From Trichosphaerium sp. ATCC 40318 (lineage: Eukaryota; Protista; Tubulinea), in assembly GCA_038496445.1 (NCBI GenBank), contig JALMLS010000466.1, forward strand, positions 62,001 to 126,000: a stretch of 64,000 bases of DNA, read 5' to 3'. The notes beneath the pieces were generated by a model that had not been told where the DNA came from, did not search any database, and saw only the letters and a program-made list of their open reading frames with translations. The translations under genes were made by a program, and so were the position numbers. This document shows, one piece after another, positions 9,101 through 61,953 of this stretch. Numbering within the stretch: the first letter of the stretch is position 1; every line of letters starts with the position of its first letter.

Positions 9101-12100
9101 GAGTCTTCTCTGCAGGTTGAGATTGAACTGGCTCTCCTTGACCTGGTGTGCCAAAGAACGATAAAGCATCCTTCAATGGAGAAGCTGTAAGCTTCTTTGT
9201 AATACCACCAAAGAAACCACCTTTCTTTTCTTCCTTAACATCCTAAATCAAAACCATGAGCCTTTTTTCATAAACAAGACTGTAGTACTTTATCAACATT
9301 AGTGATACCAAAAGAATTGAACCAAGAGCTTGCAGTACTAGCAGGGGCTGACTTTTGTGTTTCTGCTGCTGCAACTGCCTCAGCTTGTTTCTTTAGGCTA
9401 TAACCAAAAGTTAGACATTTCCTTGTGAATAAAAACTAACTAATCGTACTTCTTTTGTCTGATTCTCTCCTTTCGTAGCCTTCTCTGACGCTCTTGTTTG
9501 GTCTCCTTAGCTGGTCTAGAGCACAAAGTAAGTCATTATAGTGTAGGCAGTTGAATACGTACGATTTTTGTGGCTCAGGTGAAGATGGTGCTGCAGATGA
9601 TACAAGTTGTTCAGGTTGAGCAACTGTAGCTGCTAGGAGAGGTTTATTAATTTGTTCTTCTTCCTCTTTCTTTGCTGCTCTTGCTTCTGCAATACGTCTC
9701 CTAGCTTCTGCTTTTTTACGATCACGTTCTTCTTTGTCTTTACGAATAGCTTCTTGCTCTGCACGCTTACGTTCCTCTTCTGCACGTGCTTTTTCTTGCT
9801 CAGCTTCAGACTCGACACGCAACCTTTCAGCTTCCTCTACCTGACGCTCTGCTTCTTCTTCAACTACACGTTGAATCTCTGCTAGCTCTGCTGCCTCTTC
9901 ATCAAGGTGTTGCTCCTCTGCTAATCGTTGACGCTCTAGTTCCTGTAGGTCAAGTAACTTCTGCTCTTTTTCTTTTGTTTCTTTTACAACCCTTTCAAGC
10001 TCAAGACGCTTCCTTTCTGCCTCATCGTCTGGTCCACGTTCTTTGTTTGCTTCTTCTTCTATTATTCTTTGCTCTTTATCAATTATAGCTTGATCTTCAA
10101 GTTCTTTTCTCTTGGTATCTGCTTCTTCCTGTTCTAGACGCAGACGCTCAGATTCCTCTTCTTGACGTATCCTTTCTTCTTCTTCAAGGTTTAGGCGTTC
10201 TGCTTCTTCATCAGCTACACGTTTACGCTCAGCTTCCTCTGCTTCAAGCCGTTCGAGTTCAGCTTTTTCTTCTTCAAAACGTTGACGTTCTGCTTTTAAT
10301 TCAAGCATTTTCTGTCTTTCAGCTTCACGTTCTCTTTCGAGTTGGGCAGCTTCCTCTTCTAGCTTTTTAGAAGCAAGACGTTGCCTTTTATCCTCTTCAG
10401 CCAGACGTTTCTTTTCAGCTTCTTCTGCTTCAAGACGTAGGCGTTCTTCTTCATCAGCTATACGTTTCTTTTCAGCTTCTTCTGCTTCAAGGCGTAGACG
10501 TTCTGCTTCTTCATCAGCTATGCGTTTACGCTCAGCTTCTTCTGCTTCAAGTCGTTGGCGTTCAGCTTCTCGTTCCTTTTCTTGTCGCTCTAGCTCGATC
10601 CTCTCAGCTTCGATGCGTTTTCTCTCTGCTTCCTCAGCAGCTAATCGTTGTCTTTCTGCTTCTTCATTTTCAAGCCTTTGCCTCTCAGCTTCGAGACGCT
10701 GGCGCTCTGCTTCTAGTCTTTGACGTTCGAATTCTTCCACACGTTTGCGTTCTGCTTCTTCTTCTGCTAATCGTTGACGCTCAGCTTCCTCTTTAGCTTC
10801 ACGTATCCTTTCTTCCGCTTCAATACGTAGGCGTTCTGCTTCTTCATCAGCTATGCGTTTACGTTGGGCTTCTTCTGCCTCAAGACGTTGCCTTTCGGCT
10901 TCTTCAGCTAGACGTTTCTTTTCAGCTTGTTCTGCTTCAAGACGTAGACGTTCTGCTTCTTCATCGGCTATACGTTTACGCTCAGCTTCTTCTGCTTCAA
11001 GACGTTGGCGTTCAGCTTCTCGTTCCTTTTCTTGTCGTTCTAGCTCGATCCTCTCAGCTTCTACACGTTGCCTCTCTGCCTCTTCAGCTGCTTGCTTCTC
11101 TTCAAGTCTTTTTTGTTCTTCGGCTTCTCTAATTTTTGCTGCTGCTTCTTCCTTCTTCTTGTCTTCTTCTTCAGCAATTTTCTGAAGGTACGCTTCTTCT
11201 TGCTTAACACGTGCATCAGCCTGAGATTGACGAATCTTTTTCTCTTCATCATCAGCTAACTGACGCTTACGTTGTAGATTCACATCATCTTGCGATCCAC
11301 CAACACCTTTAGCTATGTTCTCTTCGCCATTAGGCTCAACAGTACCGTTTGGAGCTACTTGAGTATCTTCTGTAGTGGATAGAACACCTGATTCAGTCGC
11401 AAATAGTAAATCGTTGAGTTGAGACACTTCCATATCAATTGGTGTATCAACATGTGCCATAAGTGCATCACTCATAAGATCAATATTAATGAGCCTATTG
11501 GAGCAACCAAAAATAGCACTGAAGCATCGCTGTGTGTATGGTAAAAACTTCTCTGCAGATACCTTTAAAGAGTTAGATAATCCTTGAAACCTGTACTGAA
11601 GAGCATAAAAAACTATACTTACCTTGCACAAAGCAGAGTACGCTTTGCGTTCTTCTTTGTCCATATTTTTCTTTATTATATCACGTTCTGCTATCTCAGA
11701 AACAACTGCGGCAAGACTTGTTTCAAGTCGTTTAGCTAACCGATACTGTAGTGATGACGGACAACACTTTCTAGAATACAAACATTAATAACAACTATAA
11801 AATAGGTGGTCAAGATATAGAAAAAGCAAGCGTACCTAAGTTCATTGAATGCTTTAAGCATCGCATTTACGAAAATTGCAAGAGGAGGAAAATCGAGTAA
11901 GATATTAGGAGGTACAAGTGATGTCTCATCCTCATCCTCATCATGATCCGCAACACCTTGGTGGTAAACAATTGTGGATAACTAAAAGCATAGATATTAA
12001 GTACACAAAGTGGATTAATCCAAAGATTGTTAAACAGCGTGTACCTTCTTAAATTGGCTACGAAATTGGCGTTCTGCTTGGCTCAGAGTATCTGAAAACA

Positions 12101-45869: not shown

Positions 45870-48800
45870 ATGAGTCAAAATAACGACAAAAAGTAGACAG
45901 ACGCAGGCTTGGAATATATTGTGTTCTGGCCGTGCGAATCAATTAGTACGTTTGTAACTAACATTTTGACTTAACGATTAGTATCGTAGCTTCAGTGTGT
46001 TTAGATTAACAACCGACGAGCTGATTGGGCGGAAATCGTCAAAAGTTCACTAATATTTTTTTTTTGGCACGTGATACTGATTGACTTTTTAAAGTACAGA
46101 TGTGGGAAGAAAAAGAGTTAGAAGATTTCGAGACTACAAAAAAAAGCTATCTTGTAGAAGCCGGTGAAGATGGCCTAGTATTCGTACACGAGAAAAAGGA
46201 AGGCAGTAACACAGTAGATCTCTTCCTCTTGGAATACGGTAGAACATCCAACATTCTGGTTTTTTTTCTGTTTTTTTTTTCTGTTTCTCAGCTTCTCTGT
46301 AGGTTCATGGAAATGGAAGAAAATGAGATCATTTGAGATTGACACGGACATGAGACAATTTCCAAAATTTTTTATAGCACAAGGGAAGTTATGGAGTACG
46401 TTACATTCTTTTCTTTTTGCAATCTAAATTTTTTTTTTGACAGGTTTCTACTCAACACGAAAAATCAAAAGTTCAGTTGGATTATTTGATATTGAGTCAG
46501 GAAAGTACCAAAAGATACTTCATGTCAAGATTTTGGGAGATGCTATTTATGGTAGCTTACCTTTTGATCGTATTGGACATACTTGTATTGTACATGATGA
46601 AAAAGTAGGTATGTACATGTAGTTGAAAACCTACAATAAGTCATGAGTTGTTCTATGATCAATTTATACTAAACTTACCAATAGTCGTAATGGGAGGACA
46701 CCGTAATATTATTGGTTACCATTATGTAATTAAAGATGTACGAGAATTCAATCCAGGTACTACTTACCAATAAAACTGTAATTTATCAAAAAGATTGACA
46801 AGGTTTTTTAGAAACAAAGACATGGAGCATGTTATGCCGATGTTTAAAGAATTTGGATAGTCCAGGTGTGCTAATGGTTTAAGTTTCTTCTTCGTTTTAT
46901 AGCATTTACAGTAGGCATCTTTGTTTTGATTAACTTTATGTTTAATCAAAAGGAAAGGCCATAAAGTTTAGGACCTTCACTTTGTGCTACTATTTTTTTT
47001 CTTTGTGTTTACTAGTTAGTTGGACGGCAATGGCATGCAATGGCACCTGTAGATAAAGACCATATACTTATACATGGCGGCACCATAAAGCAAATAGGAT
47101 CTGTTGTTGGTACATTTGGACCGTAAAGCTCCTTTTTAACTAAGTACAAATTATAGGTGACTTATGGCTATTTCATGTCAAACGAAGAGAATGGACCAAA
47201 TGCAAGATTAATCGTGCTGTCATTATTGCTAGGCATACGTTAACAAAAGTTTGTCATAACAAGTGGGTGAGTTATGGTGGAATTACCAATGGCGGAAAGA
47301 TACATAACGAGACATGGTTACTAACACGTGGTACATACTAGTTTGGTTTTTCTTTCCTATTTCTTTCTCACCTACTTTTTCTTTCAAAAAGAGGAAAGAA
47401 CAATCAAGTTCAAATGGGAGCGATTGGAATGTACTGGTGGTCCACGTGTTTGCTTTCATAAGGCCGTATATATCCCGCATTTGAATAGTGTGTGTATTAA
47501 AGGTAATCTACAATTGGTTATGTAGTTATGTACTTACAAGCGTTCTAGGTGGTTACAGACACTATTATTTCGCTGCAAACAGTGTATACTTGTTAAATGG
47601 AGACGAGCTCTGGGGAAAGCAGTCAAATCCAACTGTTGGATCGTTAGATAAAAGTTACTTTACACCAGATGCGGTTTCGTATGAACAAGATGCGTTACAA
47701 GTCAATGAGTCAGAGGATGAGAGTAATGAAGAGGATTTTGATGAAAATGGCGAGGATATATTTCAGGTTGGTGATGAAGATAATTCAACAAGGCGAATAG
47801 CGCCTTCGCTTATCGAAAATGAAAGTGAAGTGGTTAGTGATGTATCAAATATTGTTAAGTTAATAGCGTATCAGGAGAATCTTCACTTCAACAGTAGCTT
47901 TTGGGATAGACCAGGAAGCAATGATACTGATTCATCAGACAGTGATGAATACGAAGAGAGCGAAAACAGTGTATTTAACGATATGATTGATGAATGTGCT
48001 GTATGAGACGTTTTTTTTTATTTGAAGAATTTTTTTATCTTTGTTACTCACGTGTTCGTAAAGGAAAAGTGGCATGAAGAAGAAGAACCGAAATTGTGTG
48101 CTTGGGATTTTTGGAGTTCGTTTAAGACCCAAGAGGATAGAGATATCAGACTTGATATATTTGAATATCCAAAACAAAAACAAATTAACAAAGTATGTTC
48201 TCTAGTACCTTTAAAACGCTTACAATTCACCCTAGCGTCTTAACGTTATTTCAAAGCTGCTTGGTGATAGGGTGTCTATTAATCAAGTCGAACAAACTGT
48301 TAACAATTATTGTGAATGCGAATGGAGAATAGGTGTGTTAGAAGGAGAAGAGCCTGAAAAACCTGAACCAAAGCCGAAACTGAAACAACTTCAGCGAACA
48401 TCTACCATCCCACAACACAGACCAATGAGTGATGGAACATCAGAATGGGTTGTTTTAGATAGTGATGATTCAGAAAGTGAAGGAGAGAGACCAGAAAATA
48501 GACACAACACTAGTACAAAGAAAGATGATGAGTTGGTGTTCCTAGGCCGTTTAGAAAGCAATCAATCCTCACCAGGTATGTAATCAAAACGCTTTGACAA
48601 GTGCTCAATATGTTTATTATCAATAGAAAATGAGCCAGTGTGTTCTTGGGAAATAGGCGGTGTAGTAAGAGAGGTAGGTGTAGAGTTGCCTCTTTATGAG
48701 GAATCCACACCCAAAAAAAGGAAAAGGCCTTCTACAACTGCACCGATGCTGAACCGGAATAGCCAGAAAAGGTATGCATATATTACAAGACGGGCTGTAG

Positions 48801-51308
48801 GATGGGTTTATGCTGACTGTATTTTTTTTGTTTACAGGGCCAGGGTAACTAAGAAAATAATATGGAAGGAAAAAGAAGTAACTGTTGATCTCATTCTAAA
48901 CCCGGAAGAAAAAGATAAAAGAAAGCACGTTTCAGTGCCAAAAGAGGTCAATACAAGGTGAACACCTTTCAACAACGTGCTGGATTATTCACTAACTTTT
49001 TTCAAAAGGCTACAAGACTTTCAGAGGAAAGGTGCAAAGTTTCTTTACAAGATAGCTACAACAACTGGAGTACGATATATTTTACTCGGAATATACAACT
49101 TGTTCGTGTTTTTTGCTTGCAGCAAACTTTGTGTCACATCAGCACAACTGAGAATACACTAGTTTTTATCATCTCGTTGTTTTTGTTTGCTTTATGTTTT
49201 TTAACCACGTGTTTTTTCATCTTTAGGGTATTCTTGGAGATGACATGGGTTGTGGAAAGACAGTTCAAGTCCTTGCTTTATTATACGCCTTTAAAGCATC
49301 TAAACCGACTGAAGTTATCAACCTTACTGGAGATAATCTATGGTATGATAATACTACTCTAGTAGTTGTGCCAAACATATTCATCCTTCAATCATGGCAA
49401 GGTACTCAACCTTAAAAAATGACAGTTAAGCCCTTGTGATGCTCATTCTCTCTCAGATCAAATCATTTCTTTCAATTCTCTTTTCTCCGACGAGCAAGAC
49501 CATTTAAAGCTTACTTATGGAGTGTACCATGGTAAGGATACTTTTACAGCATATGAGGATGTCAAGAAAGGATATGATGATATTCTACTAACAACAGCTG
49601 CGACATTGACTGGGAGTGATCACAAAGACAAACTCAATGTTGATTGGCGCATGATTGTCTTTGATGAAGTTCACATGTTCAAGAAAGACAGTGGGAAACG
49701 ATACAAGATATTGAAGGCGTTCAAATGCAAGTCAAGGATTGGTCTCACAGGTACTGTGTTTCAAAACAGTCCAAGTGAATTGTGGGCCACGATCAGCCTT
49801 GTGGTACGTTAGAAAGTCATTCACATTGTTTGTTCCTGATGTCTAAAGGTTAATGACTACATGGATAAAGGTTCATTTGAGAAGCAGTTCGCCGGACCAA
49901 TAAGACAAGCTCTATCTAATGAGGCATCTTACATTGATGTTGATCTTGGTGAAACTGCTGGAAAAGAACTACAAGAGCAATTGAAACATCTCATAGTAAG
50001 GAGGCACAGGAGTGTTTGGAACAAACCAGGATTACCACCTGCGCTACCACGTGCGTTCCCTCTACTTTCCTCAGCACTTTTTTGTAATTTTTTTAACTGG
50101 ATGTAGCTATAACAAACTATAAAATAGTCCTTCCTCTACTCAAGGAGCAAAAGATAAAGATGAACAAGATATTGCACCCGGGTGCTCACACCATAGTAGA
50201 AGCAGGAACAGCTAATAAAATAGCTGTTCGTACGTTGCAAAAATAACACGTGGCTTGTGATTTGATTTTTACCTTTTTTGTTTAGATCCTTTGCTACCTG
50301 ATGTGTATCAGAAAAAGATTAGACTTAGGGATATTGACTATAGAAATGTTTCTCAAGACTCGCTGAAGCTTCAATTTCTTGAAAAGGCTATTCGTTGGTT
50401 CTCAAAACAGGAGTCTTACACTAAAGTTTTATTGTTTTGCAAATATGTTAAGACGCTACAGTTTGTTGAAAAGTTTCTTCGAGCAAACAAAATAGCCAAA
50501 CATGTTAGAAAAATAATAGGTGATCAATCTGAGAACAAACGCTCAGAACACATCACGTGGTTCAAGAAATTAAAAGATAATGGTATTCTGTTGATAAGCA
50601 GAGACACGCTCAGTGAGGGTGTCGGAATAGTAGGTATGTGAAAATAAGAAAGAATGACGAAAAGGTAATTTTGTTCCTAACCAGTCTTTTATCTAGAAGC
50701 ATCTATAGTTGTATTTCTTGAACCATTCTTCAACCCATCAAAACATGCTCAGGCATCAGCAAGAGTACATAGATTTGGACAGAGTAAGTTTTGTCTACAC
50801 TTCAATTCCTCCTTTTTTCTTTTTTTTTTTTTCTCCTTCTTACTTATTGTTATTAGAATGTCACGTGCATACTTTTATGCTTGTTTCTGGTGCTATAGAG
50901 GAAAAAATTGAGCAAACGCAGTTAAAAAAGAAGATAACGCGTGCAAGGATGCTTGACAATGCACATGTAAAGGCTGTTGATGACAAAATTGTTACGTACA
51001 AAAAGCCTAAATTATCCAGCACAGATGCATCAGTTAAACCTGTCCTTATAAGCGATATGAGAAAAGAGATTGCAACAAACAACGCGCATCATAATATTCA
51101 TAGCGCTATGATTCAGATTGTCAAGGATTTGGCAGATGATGGTAAGATAATCGACTTGGAACTTAGATACCAAACATATAGCGAGTATAAAGCAAGCAAG
51201 GATATGATGAAGAAATTGAGTGAATCAAATGAGGATACAATTAAAATACTTGATAATGAAAACGCGAAAGAGTCTACTGGTCCAAGCATTGAGGATGTAA
51301 AAGATTAA
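45870..51308 (+). CDS. Kelch-repeat + uncharacterised domain + SNF2-family helicase (paralog A)
   Basis: Kelch: RIGHTCIV..VMGG, GRQWHAM..ILIHGG, GDLWLF. SNF2: LQDFQRKG, GILGDDMGCGKTVQ, IVFDEVH, RIGLTGTVFQNSPSELW, QASARVHRFGQ. The exons join in frame. The start codon is uncertain (45870 or 46100). Confidence 0.8.
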
Positions 51309-53562: not shown

Positions 53563-56500
53563 TCATTGCTCAAGTTCTGAATATTCACTCTTGTCGTCAT
53601 CTATCCCAAATTTTTGTCCCTTAGCATAGTTCGAATCTAGTTCATTCATAAAGTCTATATTGACACCGTCAAGTACAGATTTTAAGTCAGAATCAGATAC
53701 AACAAGAGACATTGGTTGCAATGTTCCTTTAAGATCGTGTATGATTTTCATGATTGCACTGTCATTTCCTTGTTGCGCTCTGTTCTCAGCAATCTTTCTT
53801 CGTATATCAGAAACACTGATAGGATCCTTGACACTAAACAAAGAGCTCAATATTTAACATTCAAAATTTTTTTGCTTTGTGAAACACGTGAAAATCACAT
53901 GTACCTAAGGAATTGTACTTCATCAGAATCAGTGTTTTTATCCTTGCTAGATGACGTGCTATCATTTTTGCTTGGATCATTACTGGGTGTTGCGCTATTC
54001 TCTTGCTGACTTTCTATCCGTTCTGTAACACAGTCTAAATCAGTGCTTGGGCCGTTGAAATAAAGGTCCTAAACGATACAATAATGAGTTGATTTATCAA
54101 GATTGGTATTCAAAGTTGTATGCGTACATCTCTATCAAGACATTTGAAGTGGCTCACGTTATCTATGAGTTTAGCACCCATACTTTTCTTCCAAATTTGA
54201 AGTTTGAAAATGTGTTCTTCTAATTCACCTGCAACAAGTGTATACGTCTTTACATGCTTTTCTACGACGCCAACGAGTTAATACTATTACGACAGTTTTT
54301 TAAATGCGTACTTTGACCAAATCTATGCGCACGTGCAGATGCTTGATCGTGCTTAAATGGATTACAAAATGGTTCAAAGAATACTACAACGGAAGCTTCT
54401 AAAAAAAATTCAATCAAAGCATCCAGATAACCACTATCATACCGACAAGTGCAACGCCTTCACTAAGTGTATCTTGACTAATCAATAGAATACTTGGCTT
54501 CTCTTGGCTCTGGAACTCTTTGATATATCTCTCTCGCGTTTTTTGGGTAACTTCTCCGGTGATACACTCACTGTCATAGTTTTTACACTTCAAGAACTTC
54601 TTTATGAGGTGCAGTGCCTTTACTTTTCTAGAGAATATCAGAACTGATTCTCCCCTTTCCTTCCACACTTTGATAGCTTTCCAATAAATTCTAGTTTACA
54701 AGAGTCATTTGCATAGGACTCCTGTACTATTGCATCTTCTGATACCAAAGAATGTAAATGTTTATCTAGTGTATCATCTCCTACGATCAGATGCTCGTTA
54801 TAATACTCAAACACAAGCCTCAAATCTAGTGTATAACTTTAGTATGGGCTATTTATACTAGTATCGGTATTAAATACGCACGTGCGGCTATACACTGTGA
54901 TGCATGCATCAGTTCAAGGAATGAAAGTCTTTTTTTTGTTGTCAGAGTAAAATACGATTCAATGCTCCAGTACTTACTTGGGGTGGGTTTTCTTCATCTG
55001 TTTCATTGCCATCTCTTGATAATGGCGCAATGGTAATATAAGTGCACAGTTTGTAATATCTATACAAAAGGTCATTAAAAGCAATTCCTTTTTTTTTTCA
55101 AATACCTGGAAGTGCAGCGTGCATGTTTTCAGTTTTATTCCACACAGTGCGATGTCGTCGAAGAAGATATTTCTTTAAAGTGCTTTGTAACTCTAGTCCT
55201 TTCTCTGTTCCAATACGTATAGTCTCTGGATCTGCACTATAGCATAAAGCGCTAATTATTGGCTTACTGAACTTTTTCTCAAAATGTTTCCAGCTCATAA
55301 ACTCTGACTAAACCACGTGATTAGAAATCAATATTAGAAGAAACTGTAAGAAAGTAGAATGTGTTTGCGAGATAAAAAACCAACGTTCGATTATGAGGAT
55401 GACACAGGCAGGTGAGAGTTGTGTTTCTAAATTTTTTCAAAGAAAAAAAAAATTGATATCGTACAACAATGTTAAACGTCGCCCATAACTCCCTCGTGTT
55501 ATTTTGAAAAACTGTGCCAGAAAGCCCAATTCTTGTCTTGCATTTAAGGTTATTAATGCATTTATAACGTTTCCCTGCAGTGTTTTTGAACATGTGTACT
55601 TCATCAATCAATATTAACCTCCATGGTTTGTCAAGTTCATCCAAGTTTTTTGCAAGTGTAGCAGCTGTAGTCAAGACTATATCACAAGAATCAGCAGTTT
55701 GAAAAGCTCTTCTACGGTTCTGTCCATGGTAAAGAGCACACTTAAGCTGGTAAGTACCAACCTCACCATAGAGCCTATTGAAACGCCCTATTTGATCTTG
55801 CCATGATAGCATAATCAAACGATTAGGCACAATAACAAGGGTTGTCTCAGTCCACTTTTCTTTTGTTTCTGATAGATCACAGTACGTCTTAAAAGCATAC
55901 AAAAGAGAAAGAGCTTGTACAGTCTTACCACAACCCATGTCATCACCCAGAATTCCCTGAACAGTACCCAATTAGTCGTCAAAAAAAACCTAAAAAAACA
56001 CGTGCTCCTGTCTTGTGTTTGTATATACGGTATAAAAACTTTACACCAACACGTTGAAACGGTTGTAGCCTATTAGATATTGAGAGTAAATATACATACA
56101 AGACATAAATTGACTTTACCTTGTGTTGATTTCTTGAGGTACCACAATATGTTTTCCAGTTTCTCGGCAATACTCCAGGTCAAGAGGGTCTTTCGCTGGT
56201 ACATCTTCCCACAAGTAATCTTCATATTTCCGTTTATCAGTCCGACTAGACGTAAAAGTTAAACAAAGAGACATCTTTAACTTCAAAGCCCCCAGTGAGG
56301 ATATTTAACTTGTAAATTTTGCGAACTCTCAACTTTGAAAAAATACTTTACCGTTTCTTTTTTTTGGTAGGAATGATAGTTTGGGCTTTTCGTTTTCTTG
56401 AGATTTCAATAACATTGTTGTCGTCCTCATCCATATCATCATAACCATCACCAAATTCACTATCTTCATCATTGTTACTATCTTCTTTGCTATCACTTCC

Positions 56501-59500
56501 ACCAGTAAGATCGATAACATTTGCGTTAGGTGTTGCAGCTGTAGTTGGAATTGAGTCCATAGGTATGGATGTAGTTAATGGAACATCTTTTGTTATTTCT
56601 TCCATACTATCCTCCAAGTCATTAACATCATCTTCATCTGCAATAAAGTCGGACATGTCATCTACAACCTGGGTAGCGTGCTGTACAGTAGATTTTTCAA
56701 CAGAGTTATCCTGGCTACTTTCAAGGCTAGGCTCAGGTTCTGGTTCATTGGGCTTGTCTGGTTCTGGACCACTCAATACACTTATACGCCAGCTAATTTC
56801 AAGGCTATTTTCTACTGTTGTTTGAAGCCCACTACACCTACGCTTCTTATTGGATTCTGTTACTTTACCTTCTTCATTTATAAGTTTGATTAGCTTCTTC
56901 AACGCCTGGTAAGAAATTAGTTTGGAATACATAATCAAAAGAAAAGGTAAAAACCAAAAACTGGGTGACACGTTTTTTCTTTCAATGGTTAGTTACCTTG
57001 TCACACTTTTGTTCGTCGTCATGTAGAATCTTAAGTTTTATTTCTTTATCTGGATTATCATGCCAGTAAGTCCAAGCACAAAGGTTTACCACCACGTTTT
57101 CTTCCCAATTAGTCTAGAGGGTAGAATAAGTATCAAGTTCGGGTAAAAAAAAAGACAAACATACTGTAAACTCTTCAATAGCTTCGTTTACCAAAGGTTG
57201 AATAACGACTTCTTCTGAGTCTATATCCTTAACGAGTAATTAATATTGGAAATGACATATATATGCTATCTAGCACGTGTATCTTACTTCTTCTCCTGAA
57301 AGATCATCAAAGTTGACGATATCTGACTAAACCACTAATGTAAGCCAAAAAAAAAACTTAGTCCAAACTTACTGTGTCTTCAACTAATTCTGGTTGTACA
57401 CGGCGGATTGGCAGTTCCTCAGGAGCGAAATCACCTTGAATTTCTTCATCCATTGAATCCGAAAAGTTGTTATCAAAAGGCGCTACAGTCATTACATTGC
57501 CACTGATAGACGTTGAGGTTCCCAACTTAAAGAACTCCAAAGCCACCTTAACAATTACAATTAATTTGCTTTCATCTCATTCAAAAAACTCAATCACCTT
57601 TTCTAGAGCTTCGCTGGATAGTTCATCATCATATCGTATACCATTCACTCGTATACCATCCTATAAAAATAATTAAAGATGAACTGAATATCGCTTTTGA
57701 TTATTTTTACCTTCTTGAACTGAGAATCACATTGCTGTACTAGAGATACTACATGATAAAATGAGTTTGCCTCCTAATATGTTAGATGCTGTTAGACATA
57801 CCTAGGGCTTCTTTACCCGTGATAGGTAAACCGAGAAGAATAGAACCACCCATAGGTTCTTCACCTAAAAACCTTGTCAAAAAAGGTAAGTAAACAAAAA
57901 ATAATCAGTACCTGAAAAGCATCCATAATTTTGACGTTTTAAAAAAGTTGTTGCTGTTCTCAAGGTATTTTTTAGCTCAATCATATCTACCTCTCCATCA
58001 ATAGAAAGGCAATCATGAGAACTATTGCAATCCTTTCGTGAACAATCAACAATAAGATCAAACCTAATATAATTATCAGCAATACTTGACCAATGTGCAA
58101 ACCCTTACCCTCCATAACGCTTAACACAGTCACACATTGCTTCTGCAAAGGAATCTTTGATAGTTTTTGTAACCAATCCACCTAAATGCGTAAACAAACT
58201 TAACACCGATCCAGGAGACAAAAAACTCGATGTTTGACTTTGTACCTTCTTCAATATCGTCCAGCTCCTCTTGGGTTTGTGCTATAGCATGAACATTACA
58301 CCCAGCATGAACAAATAACTAAATTAAAGTAATTAGAAGTACTATAAAGACAAGAAAGAACACACCTTTAAAACAGCTTCACCAAGAATTGTCGAGGCAC
58401 CAACAATAATTACAACCATACTCGGACAACCAAGTTCCTTAGTGACACTATTTTCTTTCTGTACTGGAACATCCACACTGTGTTCAGACATCTCAAAATG
58501 CCTTTCAATACTTGGAAGGGCTGTAAACTGACCAATAGACATGGCCCAATGTATCTCTTTAATTTTCTCCTCAAACATCTTACTAAGTACTGTAGCTTCG
58601 GGTACCTGCTTTCTCGTTAAAGTTCTGCCGTTTTGTCACTATTTTAATATCCGTACTGTCTTTGCAATAGCAATAAGTCCAATACCTCTTATAACCACTA
58701 TTTCAGGGTAGAGTAAAGATGTTTCTGACTGGTATGCATCAAACTCGTTCAACAAATGTTCCCCGAGGTCTTGCTCATCTGAGCTAGGACACTCGATAAA
58801 TAGGCATCCCTTTAGAGTAAAAGCATAAGAATAATATAGGTTATATCCTAAACACAGAAAAAGAAGACTGTCAGTACCTCTATTTTTGCAAGGTGATTCG
58901 CAGTCTTCATTATAATTTTTATCCATTCTTCTGCTTGCTCTGATTGGGCAAACTTTAGGATTTCGTTATCTTCATTTTGTACAACTACATAACGCTGCCC
59001 TAACGTTGTCCATATTAATCCACGTAATACCTAGAGGCACGTTAGGTATTATAAGTCTGCAACAGACAAAATAAACGCACAGGAGCCACTAGTGAGTATG
59101 AAAGATAATTCTTTGAAGGAGTCTGAGAAAGAGCCATTTTTTGGTGCCTATCAAGAAACTCTCGAATCTTCTGTATTGCTAATAATTGCGCATTATATGC
59201 TTTTTCATATGTATCACCAAAAGTGATCAAACCATGATGCATTACAACAAGACCTAACACCAAGTTATTTCTGATTATTTTCTTCAAAAAAACAATAACT
59301 TTGTGTTTGTCTATTTCATACCCACAAACGATTTTGATTGTTTTTGTACTTCAACAACACACTTAACTAATTCAAGTATATTATGAGAGTAAGAAACTAC
59401 ACCAAAATCTTCTCCTAGAGCCTAGGAAAGGTGTAAAGTTTCGAAGTGGAAAGAAAAGCTGTGATTTTACCTGTTTTATAAATTTGTCATCTGTTTGGTT

Positions 59501-61692
59501 AACGAGTGCTAATACTTCACTCGAAAAAGATTCATTGACAAATTTAAAAGGTAAAACCAGATGTAAAAGCACATTGAGTGGCCTGAAAAAAAAAGGTTAA
59601 ACTAAGAAAAAAAGAGGAATAACAACGCACGGTCTAACATCGCTGTTTGAGAATTCTCTAGCACTGCAAAGCTCGGTATACACTTTCTCGTTAGATGCAA
59701 CTGCTTTCACACACCTTACATGAAGGTAAGATAATAGGAACTACTAAAAACCGTACATAAACGCAAACTTATGTGTATGCAAAACAATGTTGCATCGGTT
59801 GAATATCAGCTAGCGAACTGCCACGTGGATTGATAGCTATCTAGCAAATAAAAGTAAACACTAAATAACTTGTTCTAAGACCTCCTTGTACTTTTGTATC
59901 TTTACCAAGCCAACTAGTTGTTGTATACTTCACAGAGCAATGACCGTTTAAAAATGCTTGTCTGTGATAATTGAATAAGCAAAAAATATGACCAAATAAG
60001 TATTAGACGTACTTATCAACGTTACACAGCACGTGATTTAAAAAACATCGTAATTTCAAATCTGGGCACACTTCATCTCCAAAACGTTCTATATACTCTT
60101 CAACTGCATCGAGTTAAGTCTAAAAGTACTCTCATGAAAAACAAGGCATTACCTTCCAAAAGCGGATCTGGATCAATCTTGTCGTCAATAGAACTCTCTC
60201 GAGATTGATCGCTGAAGGTCTCATCTACATCCATTACATCATTTGTTGAAGACAATAAATACTTCTTGCTCTTAAACCATGGGAACATCTCATGTTGTTT
60301 AGCAGGAAGCTCTATGTTACTCAATATCAAAGCATCTGTGGCCATGTCAAATAATTTCGGAATACTGGTCCAAAGATAATCGCCCAGTAACAAGTAAATA
60401 GTGTCCAAGCGTCTCATCTTGTTATTGTGGCCTTTTATCCGTTAATTTATTTGTTAAGTTCTACTTCTCGCTTTGAGAGTTCAGACTCACCATAAGTAAG
60501 TATAGCATTCAATTTCTTGATGTAAACAGATCTATGATTAAAACAAGGTTTAGGAGCATCTCTGACTTCAAGTTTACGCCAGGTAAACTCCAAGGTGCTC
60601 TCTTCAACAAGCTGTCAGATATAATTTTTAAAAAAAGTCAAACAAAAACTTTAAAGGTGTACCCCGTGTGAGAAGCCATGTGTCATTCATTAAGGTTCCA
60701 TCACAATCTAGGCCGCCATGTAAAATCCACTTATTTTCTTGCACACGTGTTAATGTATGATTAGCACGTGGCAACTGTTTGGCATGGCACTTCTTCCAAT
60801 TAATGGCATTCCTGGAGCTATCGTAAAGCCACAAGTCTCCTATAAAACACCATTAGTCCACACTTCAGTTCTAGCACATACCCAAAACCTTTCCATCATC
60901 TTTCTCGCCAATATGCCCACCGTGAACAATAGCACACGTACCGCCTGCAGGCGCCATTGCATGAAATCGTCTTGCCTCTAAATTGTTAACAAAGATGTAC
61001 ATACAAATATGGTAAACGCACGTGCTCCAGTATAGGGTTCTTCACCACGCATTTGCCAAGCATATCCTATATCCATTAATTCGTACACCCATACATCATG
61101 TTGAAGCGTGTTGTTACTATCACCTCCAAAAAAAACTGAAAAGCGTCAATACAATCTAAGTGTCACTGATTTGTTCTTACCAACATTTTGATTGTCCAGT
61201 AGTGCACTAGCATAACCAATTCTATTACCAGGTCCCCACGTATCCTTCAAAAGTAAGGTCAATCAAGAAAATCCACAAAAGCTCCACCAAAAATCCAAAA
61301 ATCCAAAAAAAAGTGAAACCTACATCATCACCAAGATCATAGTATTCTTTGGTGTCAAATGAATACTTGCTAACCATACTTTTACCTGGTGCGTTACCCA
61401 AAAAGCCTGTCAATAAATCAGATAATGTGTAAAAATCATCCAAATACACAAAACGCACTGTACAGTTCACCATTAAGCATATGATAAGTAGCGTGTTGGC
61501 GTACAGCTCCTTTTGGAGCCAAAGGAGCTAGTTTTTCCCATAACCAACCCTCTGCGCTTGTATTAGCGGTATTACGTAAAATATAATACCATGGCGTATC
61601 GTACGGTTACTTTTAGTATTCAACAGTTCGTTGACGTCTGGTGGCTTTTTAGGTAACTCTAACCACCTACAATGACAACTATCACGTTTCAT
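53563..61692 (-). CDS. Kelch-repeat + degenerate class II aldolase/SDR + uncharacterised domain + SNF2-family helicase (paralog B)
   Basis: Kelch (RQWAPA..LFTVG, GDLWLY, RANHTL..ILHGG, NDTWLL) at ~60400-61400; aldolase/SDR-like region at 57480-60103; SNF2 motifs GILGDDMGCGKTVQ, ILIDEVH, RIGLSGTVFQNNTRELW, QASARAHRFGQ. It shares intron positions with paralog A. One junction (~59700-59790) needs a weak or GC donor, and the start is approximate. Confidence 0.75.
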
Positions 61693-61953
61693 TGCTCCTA
61701 ATGACGCATTGAAAATCCTGTATGTTAAGCTAGGCACTAATTGTACCAAATTCACGCGCGAAAACCGGTTAGCTGTCAATGGCTACTTAAAGGTGTGCAC
61801 ATGTGCGTCGTTAGTTGGGCATACTACAGTCTAGACAAAGTGCACCAGGCTTCATTTTAGAAATCACGTGAGTTGTCTTTAAATCAGAAAAGGATCTCGG
61901 TTTGTTGGAAAATGAAGGTGTTTATTGCTTCTTGGCCTTCCATAATCAATAAT

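Follow-up and report, generated by a model that had tools for sequence, protein, structure and literature searches.

A degenerate bifunctional aldolase/short-chain dehydrogenase module in the gene model of a Kelch-SNF2 protein from Trichosphaerium sp. ATCC 40318

What is a bacterial-type metabolic enzyme doing in the predicted reading frame of a eukaryotic SNF2 ATPase gene, and what has become of it there? The question is raised by a 64,000-nucleotide (nt) stretch of DNA from Trichosphaerium sp. ATCC 40318, referred to here as the window (assembly GCA_038496445.1, contig JALMLS010000466.1, positions 62,001-126,000 of the forward strand; the coordinates below count from the first letter of the window). 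The window is AT-rich (GC ~0.37) and eukaryotic in character, with many short GT-AG introns. Stop-to-stop pieces on its minus strand follow one another in the order of a polynucleotide kinase/3'-phosphatase (PNKP)-like gene, MORN-type repeats, Kelch repeats, an aldolase/short-chain dehydrogenase (SDR) module, an acidic linker and an SNF2 ATPase. In the gene model derived here, a complete but dead module of the PRK08324 type is read in frame within a Kelch-DUF7607-SNF2 gene. The module, of ~585 amino acids (aa) once spliced, spans 57472-60103 on the minus strand, as delimited by hidden Markov model (HMM) matches, BLASTP and motif coordinates.

The relationship to bacterial enzymes is faint when exons are compared singly with public libraries. 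The best Pfam Aldolase_II match, to exon 7 alone as an unspliced query, reaches 14.9 bits (E 0.024) against a gathering score of 22.2 bits for PF00596, the same exon matches PDB entry 3m4r_A with an E-value of 0.003, and Pfam adh_short matches no single exon. Because Pfam gave only this one sub-threshold Aldolase_II match, a family HMM was built from bacterial loci. Relatives were fetched from bacterial and archaeal genomes with a degenerate DNA pattern for the peptide H-G-L-x-T-F-G-D-T, which biases the sample toward that motif and yielded 120 loci, nearly all with an open reading frame (ORF) of 650-700 aa and the motif near residue 195; the 55 complete bacterial ORFs among these make up the HMM. 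Run over all six-frame pieces of the window, it matches at the module locus only, in collinear segments (HMM positions 117-146, 153-188, 165-248, 247-295, 334-353 and 349-428), and exon 7 scores best (44.9 bits, E 1e-12). Once spliced, the stretch of 618 aa reaches 175.5 bits (E 9.4e-56; HMM 99-488, local), and BLASTP against single bacterial ORFs aligns query residues 5-550 with subject residues 14-612 at ~25% identity and E-values down to 2.5e-46. Each of the three parts is significant by itself, with part-HMM scores of 90.8 bits for the aldolase, 50.8 for the middle domain and 34.6 for the SDR, compared with maxima of 3.3-4.8 bits over 500 shuffles of each part. End to end, ~585 of the 618 residues align with bacterial proteins named "bifunctional aldolase/short-chain dehydrogenase", so that the module is homologous to bacterial residues ~10-675 of ~683. 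On this evidence a full-length descendant of a bacterial-type PRK08324 bifunctional class II aldolase/SDR gene is embedded on the minus strand. The preliminary description of this DNA, drawn from short peptides, had proposed a complete aldolase/SDR layout in bacterial order; the layout holds, middle domain included, and the peptides quoted for it all lie on the minus strand in the order given.

The same description had named the ancestor as a rhamnulose-1-phosphate aldolase fused to a dehydrogenase, and here the bifunctional family stands while the substrate does not. Curated NCBIfam models of the PRK08324 group match four exons, and the matched stretches of the profiles are collinear (best E 3e-6); for exon 7 NF006193 and NF006196 give 3e-6 against 0.0015 for TIGR02632. 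The rhamnulose-1-phosphate models, TIGR02632 and NF006189, are outscored on the exons and also on the nearest bacterial relative, a Nitrospinota sequence (L071) that falls under the TIGR02632 cut-off and is a full NF006192 member at 871 bits. A second bacterial sequence, L003, is an NF006196 member at 1000 bits. Both carry Pfam Aldolase_II and adh_short, and 3m4r_A matches the first 260 residues of L071 with an E-value of 1.5e-58. The closest curated models are therefore, as far as sequence comparison goes, PRK08324-type families of unknown substrate and not specifically rhamnulose-1-phosphate. The module itself is far below full membership, as single exons reach at most 25.7 bits against curated whole-protein cut-offs of 627-1240 bits, and the spliced module has only its 175.5 bits on the equivalent family HMM compared with the 871 bits of L071 on NF006192. 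The Atlas clusters nearest L071 are recorded as 89-100% bacterial, taxa of a kind that do not give the range of the family. Some bacterial members, in clusters of 477-558 aa, have Aldolase_II and an adh_short that is barely or not at all recognisable. Bacteria too, then, include members with a decayed or truncated SDR half, and part of the decay seen in the module could predate the transfer.

What has happened to the enzyme can be read exon by exon. Residues were compared in an L-INS-i alignment with 55 bacterial sequences, and their roles are those established for FucA-type class II aldolases and classical SDRs. Exons 1, 4 and 15 are placed by the homology-guided model, exons 2, 9, 11, 12, 13 and 16 by the alignment, exon 6 by HMM and alignment, and exons 8 and 10 by HMM and NCBIfam matches; all lie on the minus strand. 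Exon 1 (60013-60103), entered in phase 1, carries the N-terminal helix DLKLRCFLNHVL (60062-60027). Exon 2 (59892-59961) holds a remnant of the phosphate loop, in which the family GGGNTSVK reads NGHCSVK (59948-59928), and exon 3 (59786-59840) reads INPRGSS for VKGSGWD. Exon 4 (59631-59700) is followed by exon 5 (59471-59582), where the catalytic Glu is gone, PSvE reading PPLN (N at 59575-59573), and dHsHad reads NESFSS (NESFS at 59536-59522), which removes two of the three Zn histidines. The family PYvmPGF becomes SYSHNIL in exon 6 (59322-59421), with NIL in place of PGF. Exon 7 (59081-59253), the top-scoring exon, is the conserved heart of the aldolase half: the family HGLfTFGDT..aY is intact as HHGLITFGDT (59239-59210)..AY, including the third Zn-His position, and the HG histidine is the only one of the three that remains. 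In the middle domain, LRG and GlG are retained, as VLRGL (59030-59016) in exon 8 (58878-59030) and PEIVVIRGIGL (58707-58675) in exon 9 (58657-58809), while TPDHvIRTK reads TANHLAKIE in exon 8 and EYW.LE is gone.

The SDR half has fared no better. Exon 10 (58366-58605) contains the end of the middle domain (FEMSEHS, 58497-58477) and the start of the SDR, whose NAD motif TGaasGIG reads VGASTILG (58404-58381), with T changed to V and the middle G to I. In exon 11 (58246-58318) the conserved beta-B Asp is replaced by Ala (HAIAQT), and the cDv motif is gone. Exon 12 (58109-58181) ends in VKRYGG, and the conserved RYGG|FDLIV is split by the intron between it and exon 13 (57912-58063), so that the motif runs over 58119-58036; exon 13 keeps FDLIV, reads CSR for NAG and has Asp for the tetrad Asn in EVDMI. 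Of the Asn-Ser-Tyr-Lys tetrad, then, the Asn has become Asp, the Ser is lost with a deleted loop of 13 residues, the Tyr is absent and only the Lys is kept, the last three in exon 14 (57802-57864; GGSILLGLPITGKEAL), where ITGKEAL lies at 57823-57803. Exon 15 (57711-57748) leads to exon 16 (57598-57660), in which DGIRVN, the family GiRvN, is retained from 57660, with ~35 residues of the substrate lid missing next. Exon 17 (57373-57546) holds the SDR C-terminus (ALEFF..GNVMTVAPFD, to 57472), reads VAPF for vDGG and runs stop-free into the acidic linker. The module agrees with the family in 43 (34%) of the 125 columns with a conservation of 90% or more, a set in which no bacterial sequence falls below 80% (median 98%), and in 25 of the 53 invariant columns. 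Judged by these residues, neither active site survives and the losses exclude catalysis, in agreement with the earlier claim that the catalytic residues of both halves had been lost (NESFS at the Zn site, VGASTILG in the NAD loop, Tyr absent).

The fold, by comparison, appears to have been spared. At 135 columns, 85% or more of the bacterial proteins have a hydrophobic residue. The module has one at 106 of these positions, against its own background of 38% and against 2000 shuffles with a mean of 51, a standard deviation of 5 and a maximum of 68, a test whose alignment itself rewards such matches. At polar columns it is hydrophobic in only 10 of 102. Hydrophobic positions are kept in each part (aldolase 45 of 55, middle 32 of 39, SDR 26 of 35). 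A hydrophobic core that is kept while the enzyme-specific residues are lost is the pattern expected of a folded pseudoenzyme, and favours that interpretation. Of the candidate roles put forward in the preliminary description, namely metabolite sensor, oligomerisation module and decoy, the first is argued against by the degraded NAD and phosphate motifs.

How the module sits in its host gene depends on the splicing model, which for the module was made by hand under the guidance of homology to the bacterial family. It has 17 exons over 60103-57373 with 618 open codons after splicing. At its 5' edge there is no ATG, the module being entered in phase 1 from an exon that ends at 60153, and at its 3' edge there is no stop, as exon 57546-57373 continues into the acidic linker. 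The entire model, from 62336 to a TGA at 53565-53563, comprises 2027 open codons in ~44 exons (62336-53566). Sixteen of the 17 introns are 45-68 nt long with GT[AG] donors, and retention of any of the 16 internal introns, all of which were tested, brings a stop within or just past the intron; the 49-nt intron 60152-60104, judged by eye, reads into a TGA when retained. Exons and introns of the module differ in composition (GC 0.38 in exons versus 0.31 in introns, with intron T at 0.41), the three codon positions have GC of 0.53, 0.34 and 0.28, and introns are denser in the module (9.2 per kb of coding sequence) than in the remainder of the gene model (5.9). The view that the region is intron-rich and in frame with its neighbours is thus supported, since the 17-exon open model is continuous with the Kelch and SNF2 exons. 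Skipping of the whole module as a cassette isoform was considered and rejected on mismatched splice phases. A phase-1 donor joined to the phase-0 acceptors downstream would shift the reading frame, so that, if the locus is a single gene, its translation includes the module.

Upstream of the module, exons at 60153-61697 encode a Kelch-type propeller (Pfam Kelch_4, E 3e-8, and Kelch_3) and an acidic linker that closes at the phase-1 donor 60152. Downstream lie a DUF7607-like domain at 56780-57113 (PF24580, E 2.5e-5), which at 24.8 bits is just below its cut-off of 27, and then the SNF2 ATPase with its C-terminal tail at 53563-56245, ending in the TGA named above. The ATPase has intact motifs (SNF2-rel_dom, E 3.8e-31; Helicase_C, E 1.2e-11), among them DEVH, GKT and RAHRFGQ in the translation, and its best PDB matches are SWR1 and Ino80 (E ~1e-14), with no clear subfamily.

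The position of the module within this gene is clarified by a convergent paralogue on the plus strand (46085-51305), whose 1324-aa model has a Kelch part, an acidic linker, a DUF7607-like domain and an SNF2 part; the 3' ends of the two genes are ~2.2 kb apart. The long gene and the paralogue share 33% identity in the Kelch part (E 2e-34), 26% in the DUF7607-like part (E 4e-8; paralogue copy at 48064-48400), a domain of ~100 aa found in both, and 38% in the SNF2 part (E 1e-102). The aldolase/SDR module is missing from the paralogue, with no HMM match anywhere on the plus strand. When the two are aligned, residues 436-1109 of the long gene stand opposite residues 305-358 in the paralogue, leaving ~620 aa extra in the former, which may represent either a gain in the long gene or a loss from the paralogue. 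As the paralogue has the same architecture minus the module, the module is placed in the N-terminal linker, outside the helicase core. The preliminary description had put the enzyme "inside a helicase", which is right of the gene model and wrong of the helicase core, since the module stands between the Kelch propeller on one side and DUF7607 and SNF2 on the other.

Its age and source are harder to read. A tree places the module outside all 71 bacterial rows of a pattern-biased sample, with no supported sister; its branch measures 7.6 substitutions per site, where the median is 0.21, and is too long to point to a donor clade. The best BLAST and phmmer matches come from Nitrospinota and Myxococcota, but these matches were rejected as evidence of a donor, given the lack of a supported sister in the tree and the biased sample.

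These results can be joined in the following account. The simplest origin would be that a bacterial-type gene was acquired horizontally long ago, then gained introns and fused with a host gene. The module would still fold, as a non-catalytic structural or protein-interaction unit, and its most likely role would be self-association, with tetrameric class II aldolases and the dead aldolase domain of adducin as analogies. Self-association would gather several Kelch/SNF2 motors, or alternatively would fix the distance between propeller and motor. That the dead module is carried in the Kelch-SNF2 protein as such a folded, non-catalytic structural or self-association unit is a proposal that we hold with about as much confidence as doubt. 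We are more tentative about a fuller version, in which a eukaryotic chromatin-type motor took in an entire bacterial two-enzyme protein, which gave up its two activities but not its fold and now serves as an assembly or regulatory module. The class II aldolase fold would then have been domesticated in the manner of adducin a second time and independently, here with a Rossmann domain in addition, and one damaged coding segment may have been made into the intron 59785-59701.

Several observations weigh against this account, besides the bias of the alignment mentioned above. The chimeric frame is a feature of the gene model, no RNA run being listed for this stretch, the oligomerisation role is argued purely by analogy, and the open frame could persist merely because the helicase lies 3' of it. 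Searches for orthologues of the module also came back empty: exon 58605-58366 has no orthologue among 1.84 billion representative proteins and no match in metagenome contigs, and the best exon (exon 7) gave no candidate and no exon-sized fragment in a homologous-protein search. The five proteins that exon 58605-58366 does match are unrelated (Pfam Recep_L_domain, zinc fingers and others, several of them at multiple stretches) and are read as spurious. A helicase exon, searched against the metagenome contigs, finds distant SNF2 genes only, at 33% identity or less. The weak spot of the model is an in-frame TAA at 59771-59769, met if exon 3 is read beyond 59785 and escaped only through an atypical GTTTTG donor. 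Exhaustive enumeration of GT-AG paths over 59840-59582 finds the frame open only with the non-consensus donors GTTTTG, GTTCGC and GTGGCA. A purine occupies position +3 in 59 of the 62 introns of the two gene models, and the GTTTTG intron is an exception; the other two exceptions sit in a doubtful part of the automatic paralogue model.

To retain the homologous residues, splicing has to run from GTTTTG at 59785 to one of two acceptors, 59704 or 59701, which gives an intron of 82 or 85 nt, and no better splice that keeps the ORF around the TAA was seen among the enumerated GT-AG paths or, by eye, among GC-AG ones. In the model the intron is 59701-59785, at 85 nt the longest in the module, with T at +3 and a poor pyrimidine tract. 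About 14 ancestral residues are missing at precisely this place, and translation of the intron in two frames gives a faint likeness to them. The segment could be damaged coding sequence that splicing now removes, a lesion that disables the gene, or a fault of the assembly. That so odd an 85-nt intron falls where the module has a deletion compared with the bacterial proteins is a hint that decayed coding sequence was intronised. The earlier statement that the region is "essentially open" consequently holds at all other junctions and fails at one, and the retained stop that had been named there, at 59770, as a danger to the idea may be real, an open frame being available only by way of the GTTTTG donor.

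Of the competing explanations, the one that survives best holds that the module is a functionless spacer, open only since a stop or frameshift would kill the SNF2 part, and drifting toward an acidic, unstructured linker. Much of the record is what such drift would leave, including the extreme divergence (the branch of 7.6 substitutions per site), the large deletions in the SDR half and the near-invariant columns, of which the 43 of 125 kept are hardly above the ~23% at other columns. The paralogue manages with 54 aa plus an acidic linker at the same place, and as skipping is not frame-neutral, read-through would be forced. Against this, the hydrophobic and polar fold pattern is strongly kept in all three parts, and HHGLITFGDT..AY, YGGFDLIV and DGIRVN are intact. 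A passive spacer is disfavoured because frame constraint alone would not keep these motifs while 17 introns were gained, and we consider it unlikely.

Alternatively, the locus may be broken or split, with the TAA at 59771-59769 real in the mRNA and the long Kelch-module-SNF2 protein not made. It would then be either a recently dead paralogue or a gene whose SNF2 part is made from an internal start, with the module exons as untranslated relics. The need for a GTTTTG, GTTCGC or GTGGCA donor on every ORF-keeping path across 59840-59582, the 85-nt intron as an outlier in both length and signals, the ~14 ancestral residues missing exactly there and the lack of any listed RNA run all fit this explanation. 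All other junctions of the ~44-exon model are canonical, however, with 2027 codons open, coding periodicity and the contrast in composition between exons and introns are intact in the module, and the SNF2 motifs are intact as well. A sequencing error or a weak but used donor explains the single lesion equally well, and a broken locus in either of its forms seems to us improbable. A retained capacity to bind NAD(H), a sugar phosphate or a metal, which would make the module a metabolite sensor for the remodeller, perhaps with weak activity, has a precedent in dehydrogenase-like co-regulators such as CtBP, which sense NADH, and would suit the recognisable Rossmann-type beta-A, Gly-rich and alpha-B layout (VGASTILG), the third Zn-His position and the SDR Lys, but it is very improbable because the NAD and phosphate motifs are degraded, with the middle Gly of the NAD motif, the beta-B Asp, the DV Asp, NAG, Ser and Tyr lost on one side and two Zn histidines, the catalytic Glu, the GGGN phosphate loop and the substrate lid lost on the other.

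The folded, non-catalytic unit that we prefer finds counterparts among known systems. In its three-part order the module is the same as the bacterial and archaeal PRK08324 group (NF006192, NF006195, NF006196; N-terminal domain PDB 3m4r), from which it differs in being eukaryotic, in having 17 introns and neither start nor stop of its own, in the loss of active-site and cofactor residues, of the Ser loop and of the substrate lid, and in keeping 34% of near-invariant columns where the sampled bacteria keep at least 80%. RhaEW (YuxG; L-rhamnulose-1-phosphate aldolase/L-lactaldehyde dehydrogenase; TIGR02632) represents a sister subfamily that shares the domain fusion, and activities have been demonstrated for this branch alone (Rodionova et al. 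2013, PMC3870299), in assay mixtures that contained NAD+ and Zn salts (PMC3870299). The rhamnulose models are the weaker ones on the module exons, and the module is assigned no particular substrate.

The nearest analogue in function would be the ALDO domain of adducin/Hts, a non-catalytic, tetrameric binding module with a class II aldolase fold (PMC12599920). Both are aldolase-II folds without catalytic residues in a eukaryotic protein, with the fold in the present case deduced from the sequence pattern. For adducin, assembly and partner binding have been shown, whereas tetramerisation of the module is suggested by analogy only. Adducin also derives its domain from a stand-alone aldolase, at the N-terminus of a cytoskeletal protein, while here the whole aldolase, middle domain and SDR lie inside an SNF2 protein. 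In its mixed ancestry the gene resembles the chimeras formed by horizontal gene transfer (HGT), which are animal genes with horizontally acquired intervals in one ORF (Kapoor et al. 2026, PMC13389597). That survey covered arthropods, required phylogenetic nesting and used reverse transcription PCR for many genes (PMC13389597). As in those chimeras, prokaryote-type and host-type intervals share one predicted ORF and a paralogue has no foreign interval; the differences are that the module is a dead enzyme in mid-protein, is known from a gene model and has no supported sister clade. The host portion is akin to SNF2-family ATPases with accessory N-terminal modules, having the same SNF2-rel_dom and Helicase_C core with intact motifs. 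The module gene would belong with known kinds, the pseudoenzyme domain and the HGT-chimera. Literature searches turned up no protein that combines Kelch, DUF7607 and SNF2, whether a metabolic-enzyme module is present or not, and no mention of DUF7607 itself.

New proteins are known to arise by the reuse of dead enzymes as scaffolds and by the fusion of horizontally acquired pieces to host genes, and few well-documented cases unite both. At this locus the foreign part is complete and relatively datable, through 17 gained introns and a very long branch, and a paralogue ~2 kb away on the opposite strand, with the same architecture minus the module, provides a built-in control. If the fusion is transcribed, the gene pair would be a clean system in which to ask how a catalytically dead aldolase/SDR contributes to an SNF2 motor and by what course a bacterial ORF turns into a spliced internal domain. 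Should the TAA prove real, the locus is instead a snapshot of a dying chimera.

Around the Kelch-SNF2 gene, the window holds a few further features. MORN_2 repeats (PF07661, E 2e-8) lie directly 5' of the Kelch exons at 62336-61825 on the minus strand and are joined to them in frame by the automatic model; the two may form part of one gene. The first ATG of this stretch is only ~65 nt past the stop of the PNKP-like gene upstream (63914-62402, minus strand), in whose translations the motifs of a HAD-type phosphatase and a P-loop kinase can be seen. Elsewhere in the window, a 781-aa open frame at 9436-11781, also on the minus strand, consists mostly of EAER/KR coiled-coil-like repeats.

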